Of a stretch of DNA of 64,000 nucleotides, positions 60,431 to 64,000 are shown one piece after another. The stretch is from sequence record LR535910.1. One strand, written 5' to 3'. Every line of letters starts with the position of its first letter. Position 1 is the stretch's first letter. The position numbers were made by a program, and so were the translations under genes. Under the pieces are notes generated by a model. The model had not been told where the DNA came from, did no database searches, and saw nothing but the letters and a program-made list of their open reading frames with translations.

Positions 60431-60516
60431 TGGAGAATTTAACGCCGATTGAGATAGTGGCGCTATTGACCCTAGGTTACATGGATTTGATTTTAACCCC
60501 ATTAATTATCGAGTGA
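60430..60516 (+). CDS. 28-aa hydrophobic peptide (not in track)
   Basis: MENLTPIEIVALLTLGYMDLILTPLIIE; start overlaps upstream stop (TAATG) and fills the gap to the next gene. Confidence 0.55.
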   Translation: MENLTPIEIVALLTLGYMDLILTPLIIE

Positions 60517-60520
60517 ATAA

Positions 60521-61006
60521 ATGAAACTACAAACCGAGGTTAAGGAAATACCCGCACAAACCGTGGCATCCGCGAGTGGACTGATACTGTCTATACCGTG
60601 CGACGAATTTAAAGACTCGGCCCGTCCCGACGAAACGATATCGTTAGCATTACGTCGCGGACACGTTTTCTGTGAATTCGACGCGCCTGTGATTAAACCG
60701 TGTCAATCGTTCGGGGAAGTAAAGGCCGCCATTGATCGGATACGTTGTATTGAACTCGTACGCGTTTGCGGTTATGTATCGAACGTCTGCTATGGCGTTG
60801 TCGATGGTTACTTTCAACTCCGCGGTGAATTCACACCACACGGCCCACTCAAAGCGTTAGCGATTGAAGTGATGCGTGCAGGCACCATCATGATTTCTCC
60901 ACGTATAGAACTCGATGGATATGGGAAGATTGTTTGCATCCCATCTTTCGATGTTGTGGCAGAAGAAACCCCACGTTATCAATTTCTACGTACGGTGAAA
61001 CAATGA
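60521..61006 (+). CDS. Truncated, probably inactive paralog of the phiKZ-type prohead serine protease
   Basis: 161 aa; LRRGHVFCEFDAP, RIRCIE..V, LRGEFTPHGP, ISPR, PSFDVV follow the gp175-type motif order, but the ExxHP His is Ala. Confidence 0.6.
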   Translation: MKLQTEVKEIPAQTVASASGLILSIPCDEFKDSARPDETISLALRRGHVFCEFDAPVIKPCQSFGEVKAAIDRIRCIELVRVCGYVSNVCYGVVDGYFQLRGEFTPHGPLKALAIEVMRAGTIMISPRIELDGYGKIVCIPSFDVVAEETPRYQFLRTVKQ

Positions 61007-61335
61007 AGAAAGTTTTAGTTCTGTTAGGCGCACTCGTTGCGCCTATGGTTGCCCACGCTGCGGACAAACCACTCTTACTCGACCAGGATGTTTACGAACG
61101 TGTATTCCTGGAATGCGCTAAAACCTTTAACGGACCACAGAAGACAACCTTTAACGATTTGGACGAAGCGTTAGAGGTCTGCCGTGACACTGCAAAAGAA
61201 ATCGCGGTACGTCAAGGAACCCTCAAAATGGCAGTGGGAAGCAACTGGGAAGAAGTGCAGGTGATGGAAAAACCGGGTTACATGGTCGACCTGAACGCTA
61301 AGTTGATGCGTGAAGAAAAACAGAAACAAAAGTGA
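61003..61335 (+). CDS. Predicted exported protein with Cys pair
   Basis: 110 aa from ATG 61003; signal peptide MKKVLVLLGALVAPMVAHA; VFLEC...FNDLDEALEVC. Confidence 0.8.
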   Translation: MKKVLVLLGALVAPMVAHAADKPLLLDQDVYERVFLECAKTFNGPQKTTFNDLDEALEVCRDTAKEIAVRQGTLKMAVGSNWEEVQVMEKPGYMVDLNAKLMREEKQKQK

Positions 61336-61343
61336 GGTAAAGG

Positions 61344-62351
61344 ATGACGAAGCTCGTTTCGTTTTCAGCAGGGTTGGATTCCACCTGGATAATGTATCAG
61401 CTGTTATGCAAAGCACCGGCCAATGAAGCACGACATGTCCGTCCTGCGTATTTCTCCATGTGGAATGGAGGTAACGCGAACTTCATGGAAATTCTTTGTA
61501 GTGTGGCCATTGTTGAACGGTTGATGGATAGACACCATGCACAAACCGATCATGTTACATGGGCGGTGCTCGGGGAAGAGAACTTCCCGCCTGTCGTTAC
61601 CGCTGGATACGCTAACGGCTGGTCGCCTCTGGTTCAGCAAGGCAATGTTGTTAACGGACTCGCTAAACTGATGTGCGACATTACACGCAAACAGCACCAC
61701 GCCTATGCAGTTGTTGGTTGGAATAAGCTAGATGCGTTGGAGAATAGTCTAGAGCTGGGAGATTGGACATTAGACGAGTACGCTCGCTTAAAGAACCTCT
61801 ATAGCGAATTGATGTATTTCCAAGATCATGCCGGTCGCGTTCCACCGCTTCTAACACCTGCGTGGGATAAAGAGAAACTGGAAATGTGGCAGGAGTTGCC
61901 GGAAGACATTCGTAGATTGGTGCAGGTCAGTAACTACAACAACTACGAATTCGCGATAGACCGTGAGAATAACGTGCTCGTCGTTTATGCCCATCCGTCG
62001 GCAAAGTCGCAGAATTATCGTAGTCTTGGTATTACACCGTCTGTGGGATGGGAGATTAAAATTAACGATGCTTACAGACGGGTATGGTGTTCTGCTCTCG
62101 GTAGTGCTATTTCTGCTATGGGTTTGGACGTACCGACTTTTGCTAACTTTAAGGACCCGAAAAGAAATCACACGACCTTTACGGTAAGTGAAGATACTGA
62201 CCGGTTATGTATCACATCGTTTACCGCGGAAGAGTGGTGCGCGTATGCGCCACATTTTAAAGCGCTTCAGGAGAAAGAAAAAGAGATAGCGAAAAATGCC
62301 AAAGCAAGTAAAGCTGTGGACGCTCCAACTGGCGAAGTGGCGGATAGCTGA
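61344..62351 (+). CDS. QueC-like PP-loop (adenine nucleotide alpha hydrolase) protein, divergent
   Basis: LVSFSAGLDST (SGGxDS variant), VVGWNKLD, LLTPAWDKEKLEM in QueC order; no Cys zinc cluster; GAGG RBS. Confidence 0.7.
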   Translation: MTKLVSFSAGLDSTWIMYQLLCKAPANEARHVRPAYFSMWNGGNANFMEILCSVAIVERLMDRHHAQTDHVTWAVLGEENFPPVVTAGYANGWSPLVQQGNVVNGLAKLMCDITRKQHHAYAVVGWNKLDALENSLELGDWTLDEYARLKNLYSELMYFQDHAGRVPPLLTPAWDKEKLEMWQELPEDIRRLVQVSNYNNYEFAIDRENNVLVVYAHPSAKSQNYRSLGITPSVGWEIKINDAYRRVWCSALGSAISAMGLDVPTFANFKDPKRNHTTFTVSEDTDRLCITSFTAEEWCAYAPHFKALQEKEKEIAKNAKASKAVDAPTGEVADS

Positions 62352-62679
62352 AAAACGGAATTTGCCAAAGCTGGATATAACGGTTAAGTCGGGGCTGAAA
62401 TATTTGGCACCCGACTGGGACTTTCTGATGGACTACAAGAAGTCTGACAAAGGCCCCGACGCAGAAGCTGCGTATACCAAACGCTACCTGCAGAAGCTTA
62501 GTCGGTTGTTTGATGAAGACACTGATAAGTTGATAGAGATTCTCCGCCAGGGCGAGGTCGTACTAATGTGCTATTGCCCACCGGGGAAATTCTGTCATCG
62601 CCACTTGCTAGTTTCTTACCTTATTGAAATCGGTGAGTGGTTCGGTTATGAAGTAATTTACATGGGCGAGTTATCGTAA
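62296..62679 (+). CDS. DUF488-like protein
   Basis: 127 aa; YLAPDWDFL, YTKRYLQKL, VVLMCYCPPGKFCHRHLL; overlaps previous gene by 56 nt. Confidence 0.72.
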   Translation: MPKQVKLWTLQLAKWRIAEKRNLPKLDITVKSGLKYLAPDWDFLMDYKKSDKGPDAEAAYTKRYLQKLSRLFDEDTDKLIEILRQGEVVLMCYCPPGKFCHRHLLVSYLIEIGEWFGYEVIYMGELS

Positions 62680-62691
62680 GGAGTATTGAAA

Positions 62692-62831
62692 ATGTATTTA
62701 ATTGCTACTGGCCATCACCCACGAACGTTTAGCAGTTTCAGATTACACCGTGAAGCAGGACGGGAACACTTTCACTCTCGAGTTTACAGGGAATAAAGAA
62801 ATGGCAGCTGGATTATTAGAATAACCGTGAA
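62692..62831 (+). pseudogene. Possible frameshifted small gene or 34-aa peptide
   Basis: TAAGGAG RBS and ATG 62692 give 34 aa (stop 62796); the +1 frame reads LLAITHERLAVSDYTVKQDGNTFTLEFTGNKEMAAGLLE, which looks more protein-like. Confidence 0.3.
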
Positions 62832-62870
62832 TTTCCTTTGCACCGCACCCTAACTTTTTAAGGAGTCCTC

Positions 62871-63266
62871 GTGAAATTGATTATGCCTAAAACCGTTCCT
62901 AATCAGGATATGGTTACGACTACACTGTTTTCTGAATCATTACGTAACTCTGTACGTCAGACCGCTTCACGTCTAGACGTAGCGGTTGAAGAACTCGACC
63001 CAGGGGTTTTCATGAAGTATGCGTTTATTGCAGAAGGTTACGCGATCGCCCTGAGTTATGCGCGGTATGTCGATGACGTGACAGAAGCTAAACGTTATTT
63101 AGAAGGCTGTTGTCAAGTTTTCCGTGAAGAAATCACCGAGATGGAGATGGTTGACCGCGGCTTACCTGAATTTGTAAAGGTGGGTTACGATAAGCTGTTG
63201 CAATCCATCGCGGATGAAATCGGACGTCGCGGGTTAACTGTAGTGCACAGCGCTACACTGCACTAA
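62871..63266 (+). CDS. Hypothetical protein
   Basis: 131 aa; TAAGGAG RBS, GTG start. Confidence 0.8.
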   Translation: MKLIMPKTVPNQDMVTTTLFSESLRNSVRQTASRLDVAVEELDPGVFMKYAFIAEGYAIALSYARYVDDVTEAKRYLEGCCQVFREEITEMEMVDRGLPEFVKVGYDKLLQSIADEIGRRGLTVVHSATLH

Positions 63267-63280
63267 CACCGTACGAGTAG

Positions 63281-63320
63281 GCTACCACACGATCATATGT
63301 GTGGTAGCTTATTTTTTTGT
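63281..63320 (+). terminator. Intrinsic terminator whose loop overlaps a TATG
   Basis: GCTACCACAC-GATCATAT-GTGTGGTAGC plus T-tract; TATG 63296-99. Confidence 0.75.
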
Positions 63321-63334
63321 TTCTGGAGGCGTTA

Positions 63335-63868
63335 ATGGCAGACCGCTATCAGCCCGACCTAACACTCTCGTCGAAAGCGCTTGTCGTGGCGTTGATTAAT
63401 CACGATAACGGCTTGTCATTATCGCCTGACGAGATTGTGATAAGCGGGGTAGGGCCTATCGACTTAGGTGTTGAAAGTGCCCGTACCACGCAAGCGTACA
63501 TTGCAAAAGCACGTAAACCTAACGGTAAGAAGATTACCGTCTATTACGACCGTCTAGCTGCTAATAAGATTATCGACCCGCAAGGACCGATACTGGTTAC
63601 TGTAGCTCCCGGCGACACCTATGCTGATTTAGCGACAGTTGTAAACCAGTTGTGCGGTTTAAACTTGTCACGTGAGGACATCTCGACAGGGGTTATTACA
63701 CCAACAAACGAGCCGTTGATTGCACCGATGAGTGACGATTCACCGGCTTGGACGGCTACCTTTACATTCACGGCGTTTAATGAAAAAGAAGCTGTGGCAA
63801 GTCTGGATGAAGAAACTGTTTTATGCATCGGTGATGATGCAGTGTTAACCTACGGAGACGATGCATAA
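63335..63868 (+). CDS. Virion structural protein, baseplate/tail-fibre attachment-type domain
   Basis: 177 aa from ATG 63335 with GGAGG RBS; DLTLSSKALVVALINHDN, ITVYYDRL and GLNLSREDI are shared with 41413 and 46241 proteins. Confidence 0.7.
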   Translation: MADRYQPDLTLSSKALVVALINHDNGLSLSPDEIVISGVGPIDLGVESARTTQAYIAKARKPNGKKITVYYDRLAANKIIDPQGPILVTVAPGDTYADLATVVNQLCGLNLSREDISTGVITPTNEPLIAPMSDDSPAWTATFTFTAFNEKEAVASLDEETVLCIGDDAVLTYGDDA

Positions 63869-64000
63869 TGGCAACTGTAGTCAAAAAGAAACGTTTGCAT
63901 GAACTCGATTCTTACAACGGTGATAAGTCGAGCGCGGTAGCGCTTATCAGCGTTGATGAAAAGGAGTACAAACTTCCTCTCAGTGAAATCGGCGGTGGTG
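63868..64000 (+). CDS. Partial CDS, probably tail-fibre related (runs off the right edge)
   Basis: MATVVKKKRLHELDSYNGDKSSAVALISVDEKEYKLPLSEIGGG; TAATG coupling. Confidence 0.65.
   Translation, partial: MATVVKKKRLHELDSYNGDKSSAVALISVDEKEYKLPLSEIGGG

Follow-up and report, generated by a model that had tools for sequence, protein, structure and literature searches.

A zinc-less QueC-like PP-loop protein and an overlapping DUF488 gene in the Salmonella jumbo phage SPFM13

What would a phage do with a QueC-like enzyme if its genome holds no other step of 7-deazaguanine synthesis, and is the small gene that overlaps it a partner or a separate neighbor? These questions were raised by a window of 64,000 nucleotides (the whole stretch of DNA analyzed, from sequence record LR535910.1), which belongs to Salmonella phage SPFM13, an SPN3US-like, nucleus-forming jumbo phage of the Chimalliviridae. 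An earlier sequence-only reading had described an orphan QueC-like adenylating enzyme overlapping a DUF488-like gene and had proposed that the two form a module, possibly a decoy of QueC-based defence. We examined these proposals using structure prediction, profile comparisons, genomic context and the literature.

Two genes sharing 56 nucleotides

The first gene, ORF A (61344-62351, plus strand), encodes 335 amino acids from an ATG start and corresponds to SPN3US_0119 (gp119). A Shine-Dalgarno-like GAGG, as read from the sequence, stands 7-10 nt 5' of this ATG (61334-61337, plus strand). The second gene, ORF B (62296-62679, plus strand), encodes 127 amino acids, corresponds to SPN3US_0120 (gp120) and belongs to the 'active' DUF488-N3a subclade. 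ORF B is read in the +1 frame relative to ORF A, and both the coordinates and the 56-nt overlap (62296-62351, plus strand) noticed in the earlier reading were confirmed. The shared segment encodes the disordered tail of ORF A and the conserved first beta strand of ORF B. Both are genuine genes rather than chance open reading frames: a set of 1.8 billion proteins yields 46 representative clusters for ORF A, and homologues of ORF B turn up in 290 phage records. Both genes were also found in public 'RNA' runs; these consist of contigs from related strains, of wastewater or cDNA type, and indicate presence only. Literature searches on SPN3US gp119/gp120 or phiKZ gp151 returned nothing relevant, and a search combining SPN3US with QueC returned no papers. 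The SPN3US-like and Erwinia jumbo phages in which ORF A is conserved are under study for therapy or biocontrol.

Fold and active site of the QueC-like protein

The AF2 model of ORF A (pLDDT 84, pTM 0.87) adopts the Rossmann-like alpha/beta fold of solved PP-loop ATP pyrophosphatases. QueC (3bl5) ranked first against this model with VIA-align (Z 12.2, 180 of 195 residues), the likeness comprising the N-terminal PP-loop and the strand order of the Rossmann-like core over about 180 residues, and was followed by YcfA, NcsA, TilS and LarE. A Z of at least 8 was reached by 64 PDB chains, and the top-ranked ones listed were all PP-loop enzymes. Foldseek, which had been suggested as a check, returned mostly QueC or QueC-like proteins as best matches in Swiss-Prot, the ESM Atlas and BFVD, many of them viral. 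At the profile level, E. coli QueC matched a 49-member ORF A family with an hhalign probability of 96.7% (E 4e-10; ORF A residues 1-184 against QueC residues 1-171), and the family profile searched against the PDB recovered Cap9 as its best match (9nto, E 3.6e-5) as well as QueC (2pg3, E 1.4e-3). The PP-loop ATPase fold is also shared with YcfA of Erwinia amylovora (PDB 9kq7), LarE, NcsA, TilS, NadE and GMP synthase (Z 8-11.7). However, profile alignments to these thiolases and amidotransferases are limited to the PP-loop and its surroundings, roughly the first 20-50 residues, and ORF A possesses neither conserved Cys or Fe-S ligands nor their family-specific motifs. These results place ORF A among the PP-loop ATP pyrophosphatases, closest to QueC and Cap9. 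ORF A also matched phrog_8825 (E 3.5e-138), and a 12-member alignment used to look for related loci identified four in IMG/VR, all of them known phages. The ORF A clade is a small one on the QueC branch and occurs in jumbo phages wherever its context is known.

We then compared the residues kept and lost relative to QueC, counting conservation over the 49 family members. The SAGLDS motif noticed in the sequence was confirmed as a pyrophosphate-binding PP-loop (61365-61382, plus strand; residues 8-13) and aligns to the SGGxDS loops of QueC, Cap9, TilS and LarE. Within it, G10 and S13 are invariant in 49/49 members, position 8 is occupied by S or T and position 12 by D or E (Glu in 19/49), and the SPFM13 phage has Ala in place of the second Gly. 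Family members share about 15-20% identity, and seven residues are strictly invariant at this divergence: G10, S13, Q98, G125, P172, K178 and K221. The wider family motifs are Q98-Q99, G125-W126-x-K-x-D130, D140-W141-T142, P172-x-W174-x-x-x-K178 and K221-x-x-x-Y225. As in QueC, ORF A presents a 'TPxxxxxKxExW' segment, whose lysine K178 (49/49) aligns to K165 in the PLxxxxKxE segment of QueC, and a conserved Glu (E49, corresponding to QueC E42).

The remaining QueC motifs are absent. In the hhalign alignment, the YxQxHxxE motif has lost Y35, Q37 and H39 (M39, N41 and G43 in ORF A), and only its Glu is retained (E49). The VPxRN motif aligns to V97-Q98-Q99-G100-N101, with R99 replaced by G100, and this Arg position is variable across the ORF A family (G/F/W/I/L). 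The YPDC motif, which serves base recognition in QueC (Tyr stacks on the base and Asp reads the Watson-Crick edge), aligns to G139-D140-W141-T142; an acidic-aromatic pair (D140, W/F/Y141) is kept at this position, in permuted order and in a low-confidence loop of the model. The alignment ends at QueC residue 171, before the zinc motif, and no conserved Cys and no CxxCxxC was found in any of the 49 members, in agreement with the missing zinc Cys cluster described from the sequence. The definitions of YxQxHxxE, VPxRN, YPDC and the zinc motif C(x)8CxxCxxC follow PMC13329287, where Y35, R99 and Y131 of QueC were found to be essential by mutagenesis.

By these sequence comparisons, ORF A is not a canonical QueC. 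A Pfam scan returned no family at E<=1 and the gathering score of PF06508 was not reached; weak Pfam QueC matches were obtained for 9/49 family members, and one JGI homologue was auto-named 7-cyano-7-deazaguanine synthase. It is very unlikely that gp119 is an ordinary QueC turning host-made CDG into preQ0 for the modification of phage DNA or tRNA: QueC is the nearest fold, the JGI annotation points in this direction and some jumbo phages have partial deazaguanine systems (PMC7824862), but gp119 fails the Pfam QueC model, Y35, R99, YPDC and the zinc motif are missing, and annotation, BLAST and phmmer revealed no dpdA/TGT to insert the base. A 2026 survey of PF06508 was defined by this Pfam family (PMC13329287) and, since ORF A has no score against PF06508, the zinc-less clade with its own invariant motifs presumably lies outside the map of that survey.

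ORF A further differs from QueC by an insertion around residues 60-95 and by about 100 extra C-terminal residues. The QueC-homologous catalytic domain (61344-62036, plus strand; residues 1-231, the VIA-align range against 3bl5) stops near residue 231, and the family-variable C-terminal extension (62037-62348, plus strand; residues 232-335) stands where QueC has its zinc subdomain. An extra region of about 120 aa had been proposed at this end; the region is present, with a length of about 104 residues. For residues 232-325 a folded structure is predicted that includes small beta elements and a helix of 30 residues (295-325), and the last 10 residues are disordered. Homologues match ORF A over about residues 1-240 only, and an atlas search with the extension yielded sub-threshold matches only. 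We also considered the C-terminal 'GEVA' tail as a docking motif but rejected this reading: the tail seems conserved because the same DNA also encodes QLAKWR in the conserved N-terminus of ORF B, an effect of dual coding.

With the ATP/pyrophosphate-binding loop and the 'TPxxxxxKxExW' lysine both kept, ATP binding and adenylation of a substrate by ORF A would be very probable; given the Glu at position 12 in 19/49 members and the Ala in the loop of the SPFM13 protein, activity is plausible. Alternatively, the PP-loop fold could be non-catalytic and serve as a pseudoenzyme, nucleotide sensor or scaffold. The variant loop (SAGLDS, with frequent Glu in place of D12) and the long, variable C-terminal parts are compatible with this, but strict invariance of seven residues at such low identity is typical of an active site, which makes a non-catalytic role highly improbable.

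Our preferred interpretation, to which we assign a probability of about 0.55, is that of a zinc-less QueC-superfamily clade in which gp119 adenylates a nucleobase-like acid or carbonyl group, gp120 being a separate enzyme and the two forming no obligate pair. Under this interpretation gp119 would not be a preQ0 synthase. Its substrate would be planar and nucleobase-like, with a carboxyl or ring carbonyl that gp119 activates by forming an acyl- or enol-adenylate; ammonia, an amino acid or a protein amine may then resolve this adenylate as the nitrogen nucleophile, in the manner of QueC, Cap9, NadE, GMP synthase and TilS. PP-loop thiolases and amidotransferases follow such an adenylate-then-substitute mechanism. 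Sulfur chemistry within gp119 is argued against by the lack of any conserved Cys in the family. That ORF A is an adenylating PP-loop enzyme of QueC type whose active site departs from the canonical one, as the sequence-only reading proposed, is therefore supported by fold, profile and motif comparisons alike. ORF A is a well-defined but uncharacterised predicted enzyme and no surprise on present evidence; its substrate could reveal a new modification of nucleobase, protein or nucleic acid, or a form of counter-defence.

Pathway genes and defence context

Unlike QueC, ORF A comes without partner pathway genes. No folE, queD, queE or dpdA is present in the window, as the earlier reading had stated, and extending the search to the whole 240-kb SPN3US genome (annotation, and tblastn and phmmer with the DpdA, FolE and QueD enzymes of phage 9g) revealed none either. 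This absence holds at annotation, BLAST and phmmer sensitivity, and ORF A is an orphan as regards the preQ0/dpd pathway. The radical-SAM genes of SPN3US were considered as QueE candidates and were rejected as SPASM/RiPP-type.

The QueC fold family is used away from preQ0 synthesis in bacterial defence as well: Cap9 of type IV CBASS conjugates deazaguanine to protein, and QatC of QatABCD is proposed to do likewise. Like ORF A, QatC has replaced its CDG-recognition residues. In contrast to ORF A, both Cap9 and QatC retain the zinc motif, and they adjoin CD-NTase/Cap10 or QatA/B/D in bacterial defence islands, whereas ORF A is encoded by a phage without such neighbors. We searched the locus with PADLOC and obtained no match for ORF A, its neighbors being phage genes.

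It is conceivable, although distinctly unlikely, that gp119 acts in counter-defence by consuming, sequestering or mimicking what type IV CBASS (Cap9) and QatABCD (QatC) depend on, be it the 7-deazaguanine precursor or their QueC-like enzyme, such that protein deazaguanylation would be blocked. Cap9 is the best PDB profile match of the family, Cap9 and QatC need CDG-type chemistry for defence, CDG is supplied by the host, and the gene is not explained by any phage pathway. However, the CDG-recognising residues and the zinc site kept in QueC and Cap9 are absent from ORF A, the gene family is located among DNA-metabolism genes with no PADLOC match, and no phage inhibitor of this kind was reported in the literature on Cap9 and QatC that we examined. 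The decoy suggested in the sequence-only reading is unsupported, given the lack of a PADLOC match and the lost CDG-recognising residues. A broader version is likewise unlikely: gp119 might be a viral QueC-superfamily ligase that, while a nucleus-forming phage infects its host, joins a nucleobase-like acid to proteins or to nucleic-acid ends, or else a drain or mimic of type IV CBASS/Qat deazaguanine chemistry, with gp120 processing the same adduct. If true, bacterial deazaguanylation systems would thereby gain their first viral counterpart.

The DUF488 protein and its pairing with ORF A

ORF B scored 46.1 bits against PF22751 (DUF488-N3a; gathering cut-off 27, E 7.3e-12) and also passed the threshold of PF04343 (DUF488), whereas the inactive subclade PF22752 yielded 14.9 bits, under its cut-off. 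The DUF488 subclades were reportedly defined in 2023 by Burroughs and Aravind, who are said to have placed them in the rhodanese-phosphatase superfamily. ORF B also weakly matched the model of DUF4326, a family placed in the same superfamily (PMC9503650). The putative active-site loop C92-Y-C94-PPGKF-C100-H101-R102 (62569-62601, plus strand) contains CYC at 92-94 and CHR at 100-102, and C92, Y93, C94, F99, C100, H101 and R102 show no variation across 18 homologous sequences including phiKZ gp151. In the AF2 model (pLDDT 96), this loop lies between a strand (87-92) and a helix (101-115). The description of a small DUF488-like protein with CYC...CHR thus holds. Foldseek against the PDB and Swiss-Prot found nothing at E<=0.001, and the best wide structural match, RapZ-C (Z 6.4), like the DUSPs (Z about 4), is within the noise of the method. 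DUF488-N3a, DUF4326 and the RapZ C-terminal domain were the closest known groups to which ORF B was compared. In phage clusters, NADAR is found fused to DUF488-N3a. ORF B is a separate, broadly conserved predicted enzyme of chimalliviruses, most likely a phosphoesterase or phosphotransferase targeting ribose-phosphate, ADP-ribose-derived groups or nucleic-acid ends.

Pairing of ORF A with ORF B was then surveyed across genomes. Among phages it is limited to the SPN3US/Erwinia clade, with an overlap of 53-56 nt in Seoulvirus and in several Erwinia phages, and the ORF A/ORF B overlap follows a conserved gene order. In one distant metagenomic contig (L010), ORF A and a DUF488 gene are adjacent. 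DUF488 homologues, including phiKZ gp151, occur mostly without ORF A (290 phage records versus 68 for ORF A). In phiKZ and Noxifer, the DUF488 gene occupies the same syntenic slot behind UvsX and not behind a PP-loop gene, and in Wellingtonvirus (Kwan) three genes stand between the two homologues. The gene downstream of ORF A bears no relation to DUF488 at eight more distant loci. The possibility that these eight genes are hidden DUF488 proteins was rejected: none presents CxC...CHR, the four compared with hhalign gave no match and the three scanned with Pfam gave nothing. We similarly asked whether phiKZ gp152, upstream of the phiKZ DUF488 gene, is a PP-loop protein that had escaped recognition, and rejected this. 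The co-occurrence expected of a module is observed in the SPN3US/Erwinia clade, and not in most other DUF488 records or at the eight distant loci. The two-gene module put forward in the sequence-only reading is, in an obligate form, weakly supported because the pairing is confined to one clade, interrupted in Wellingtonvirus and absent from the eight distant loci; gp119 and gp120 are no obligate pair.

A true two-enzyme module would have gp119 adenylate a substrate on which gp120 then acts through its Cys/His/Arg loop, either as a persulfide carrier (a split ThiI-like thiolation) or as a phosphoesterase that could finish or reverse the modification. ThiI is a precedent for pairing a PP-loop with a rhodanese, the fold matches of ORF A include the thiolases YcfA, NcsA, MnmA and LarE, and the position of the ORF B loop between strand and helix recalls rhodanese and phosphatase active sites; the recurrent overlap and the adjacency in the distant contig point the same way. 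Yet the ORF A family has no conserved Cys, most chimalliviruses carry DUF488 without ORF A, as in the UvsX slot of phiKZ and Noxifer, and the unrelated downstream genes and the three-gene gap in Kwan likewise speak against it. We consider such a two-enzyme module unlikely. A complex prediction for ORF A and ORF B gave a score of 0.07, which we counted neither for nor against it. Recurring overlap or adjacency with DUF488 across several genera and a distant contig would also fit a functional link and, within the SPN3US/Erwinia lineage, the 56-nt overlap probably leads to co-transcription and perhaps to translational coupling.

ORF A and the QueC superfamily

The region at 60500-63300 is 100% identical, with equal coordinates, to Salmonella phage SPFM13 (LR535910.1) and 97.5% identical to SPN3US, which belongs to the genus Seoulvirus of the family Chimalliviridae (nucleus-forming jumbo phages). 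The sequence-only reading had described two genes here that overlap by 56 nt, and both were found as described. ORF A (61344-62351, + strand, 335 aa) corresponds to SPN3US_0119 (gp119), is annotated as 'hypothetical' in GenBank and is preceded by GAGG 7-10 nt upstream of its ATG. ORF B (62296-62679, + strand, 127 aa) lies in the +1 frame relative to ORF A and corresponds to SPN3US_0120 (gp120), named 'hypothetical' in GenBank and 'DUF488 family protein' in RefSeq. Support for this ORF B start comes from its homologues, phiKZ gp151 among them, whose alignments run from residue 3-5 onward, and from the model, whose first strand begins at residue 3.

ORF A presented no Pfam match and no meaningful NCBIfam match. 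Its clade is already catalogued, without function, as phrog_8825 (E = 3.5e-138), and a weak match to the QueC-like phrog_1550 was also detected. An exhaustive HMMER profile search found relatives in only 46 clusters among 1.84 billion representatives, conserved from residue 1 to ~240 and variable beyond. Using the confident AlphaFold model (pLDDT 84, pTM 0.87), the best VIA-align match was B. subtilis QueC (Z = 12.2, 180 of 195 residues, model residues 1-231), followed by YcfA of Erwinia amylovora (Z = 11.7) and then by NcsA, TilS, LarE and MnmA. Foldseek against Swiss-Prot returned QueC and argininosuccinate synthases, and ten ESM Atlas matches were all QueC clusters, several of them viral, except for one without a name. 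BFVD yielded the family itself, followed by QueC-like proteins from further jumbo phages, among them Miami, RSF1, YC and Noxifer. Weak Pfam QueC matches were present in 9 of the 49 aligned relatives and matches to the generic PP-loop family in 4. The profile of these 49 members matched Cap9 (9nto, E = 3.6e-5), QueC (2pg3, E = 1.4e-3), TilS and LarE, and hhalign paired E. coli QueC 1-171 with ORF A 1-184 (probability 96.7%, E = 4e-10). Because fold and sequence-profile matches converge, ORF A is a QueC homologue within the PP-loop superfamily, as had been proposed, and it is predicted to work like the enzymes of this family.

Canonical QueC is defined by SGGxDS, YxQxHxxE, VPxRN, YPDC, K165 and C(x)8CxxCxxC; Y35, R99 and Y131 are essential and, according to the authors, a protein with an altered signature is expected not to make preQ0 (Libby et al. 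2026, PMC13329287). Within YPDC, the Tyr stacks on the deazaguanine and the Asp reads it (Gao et al., PMC13279940). In the hhalign mapping, ORF A retains the PP-loop (SAGLDS), a Glu (E49) and a Lys (K178), but the position of Y35 is M39, V-P-x-R-N is V-Q-Q-G-N, Y-P-D-C is G-D-W-T, and the alignment ends upstream of the zinc motif. Neither a CxxCxxC motif nor a conserved cysteine was found in the 49 members, and the missing zinc cluster of the sequence-only reading holds across this alignment. The invariant or near-invariant residues are G10, S13, E49, Q98-Q99, G125-W126-x-K-x-D130, E133, D140-[FWY]-[ST], Y146, P172-x-W174-x-x-x-K178 and K221-x-x-E-Y225-x-x-x-G-I. Of eight tests for belonging to canonical QueC, ORF A failed five, and it also failed the genomic-context test for Cap9 and QatC, the defence-type homologues. 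The extra C-terminal region, previously put at ~120 aa, is present and spans about 104 aa, since the QueC part ends at residue 231 in VIA-align. This region takes the place of the QueC zinc subdomain and gave no informative match in the atlas search; its predicted content is small beta elements, a helix (295-325) and a tail that is disordered. Within the QueC superfamily, these proteins form a small clade that lacks the zinc site and comes mainly from jumbo phages.

Pathway genes and predicted chemistry

The RefSeq annotation of the whole 240-kb SPN3US genome contains no GTP cyclohydrolase I, QueD, QueE or TGT/DpdA. We searched the rebuilt genome with DpdA, FolE, QueD, Gat-QueC and QueE of phage 9g (tblastn and phmmer) and recovered nothing beyond the generic radical-SAM core (E = 0.002-0.004) and gp119's own PP-loop (E = 0.47). 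As neither source gave a pathway enzyme, a complete dpd pathway is not found in SPN3US at this sensitivity, and the proposed orphan status of ORF A stands. Two radical-SAM genes that lie next to each other (NC_027402.1, 140024-142139, outside the window) were ruled out as QueE: they are SPASM/RiPP-maturase-like. The larger of them is similar to SPASM-domain peptide (RiPP) maturases, an unusual cargo for a jumbo phage.

In ORF A the ATP/PPi site looks intact and sits on a QueC-type fold, with a remodelled pocket, no zinc site, no conserved cysteine and no pathway partners. We propose that gp119 would adenylate a carboxyl or ring carbonyl of a planar nucleobase-like molecule and that the adenylated group would then be handed to a nitrogen nucleophile, a chemistry common to QueC, Cap9, NadE, GMP synthase, TilS and argininosuccinate synthase. 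That no cysteine is conserved argues against a self-contained thiolase of the LarE, MnmA, ThiI or NcsA type. In SPN3US, gp119 is surrounded by a DNA/nucleotide-metabolism block with thymidylate kinase, a Dam-type methylase and GNATs; in relatives this block includes DNA ligase and RNase H. A viral enzyme that conjugates nucleobases or counters deazaguanylation is an improbable reading of gp119, at roughly one chance in eight. It is possible that ORF A acts as a decoy or counter-defence protein against QueC-based defence, as had been suggested, but we found no positive evidence for this role. Overall, the observation behind the sequence-only reading was confirmed and its interpretation supported in part only.

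ORF B and its pairing with ORF A

ORF B scored above the Pfam thresholds for DUF488-N3a (the 'active' subclade) and DUF488, and below threshold for the inactive DUF488 subclade and DUF4326. The CYC...CHR signature recognized earlier is invariant among 18 homologues including phiKZ gp151, together with further residues (T29, S32, A38-P39, Y60, C92-Y-C94, F99-C-H-R102 and G124-E125). In the model, which is of very high confidence (pLDDT 96), the Cys/His/Arg loop follows strand 87-92 and precedes helix 101-115. Foldseek gave no significant match to solved structures. In a wide VIA-align comparison the top match was the C-terminal domain of RapZ (Z = 6.4), and many dual-specificity phosphatases were also listed (Z about 4), all within the method's stated noise. 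DUF4326 and its kin have been assigned to the rhodanese-phosphatase superfamily (Aravind group, PMC9503650). The modelled ranking agrees with this assignment without proving it. A RapZ-C/DUF488/DUF4326 clade was reportedly defined in a 2023 paper. Atlas neighbours of ORF B were mostly viral DUF488-N3a clusters, and in one ESM Atlas cluster of 272-aa phage proteins the domain is fused to NADAR, which is proposed to process N-glycosidic linkages in ADP-ribose derivatives (Aravind group, PMC9503650). This fusion hints at a role of DUF488-N3a in processing ADP-ribose-type adducts. Given the family assignment and NADAR fusions, the most likely role of gp120 is a separate one, with ribose-phosphate, ADP-ribose-type groups or nucleic-acid ends as its targets. 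PADLOC gave weak matches of ORF B to two candidate defence components.

The sequence-only reading had also proposed a two-gene module. Overlap or tight adjacency of ORF A and DUF488 does recur in Seoulvirus, STsAS/SPAsTU and several Erwinia phages, and a distant ORF A homologue (24% identity) on a metagenomic contig has a DUF488-N3a gene directly downstream. However, 290 phage records (Pseudomonas, Vibrio, Serratia, Klebsiella and others) contain a DUF488 homologue, against 68 with a homologue of ORF A. phiKZ (150331-160675), Noxifer and SPN3US (window 60500-63900) share the gene order 'X - DUF488 - small gene - virion protein', and ORF A therefore fills a slot in a conserved syntenic block: X is a PP-loop gene in SPN3US-like phages and a UvsX-like gene in phiKZ and Noxifer, unrelated to ORF A in phiKZ, the one tested. 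Three genes separate ORF A from DUF488 in Wellingtonvirus (Erwinia phage Kwan, 112443-121811), and the downstream gene is unrelated to DUF488 in Aeromonas phage AhC3_1, Salmonella phage SA002 and six metagenomic loci. In one of these eight loci it overlaps the ORF A relative by 53 nt. Since unrelated genes overlap it too, the 3' overlap seems to be a tendency of the disordered tail in this family and not a sign that the two genes are partners. The record counts, phiKZ, Noxifer, Kwan and the eight loci speak against an obligate link, and the obligate module is weakly supported. The complex prediction for ORF A and ORF B returned no answer. The seemingly conserved C-terminal 'GEVA' of ORF A was rejected as a docking motif: it is a +1-frame shadow of the conserved QLAKWR of ORF B. 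The genes inserted in Kwan encode a 166-aa protein overlapping the 3' end of the PP-loop gene, a 580-aa AAA+/HslU-like ATPase and a small ORF; the Kwan DUF488 gene is annotated 'GIY-YIG catalytic domain protein', which looks wrong.

Variation around the two genes

Between gp117 and ORF A lies a 110-aa ORF (61003-61343; phrog_10627) with a signal-peptide-like N-terminus (MKKVLVLLGALVAPMVAHA). This ORF is inserted or deleted as an exact cassette, flanked by two ATGA stop/start junctions, and 61002 is joined directly to 61344 in contigs of a ~95%-identical relative (four public runs). The same strains lack the 180 nt downstream of ORF B (62683-62862, containing only a 40-aa ORF), with 62682 joined to 62863. 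Further upstream, a 161-aa ORF (60521-61006) matches phrog_7478 'head maturation protease' and bears this name in RefSeq SPN3US, where a second gene so named (267 aa) is annotated at 220808-221611. As two genes carry it, one of the names is probably wrong. Finally, many SPFM assemblies (LR535903-LR535917, SPFM5-SPFM20) match the region only as ~40 short pieces with fragmented ORF A and ORF B homologues, which points to assemblies of low quality with many indels and not to genuine pseudogenes.
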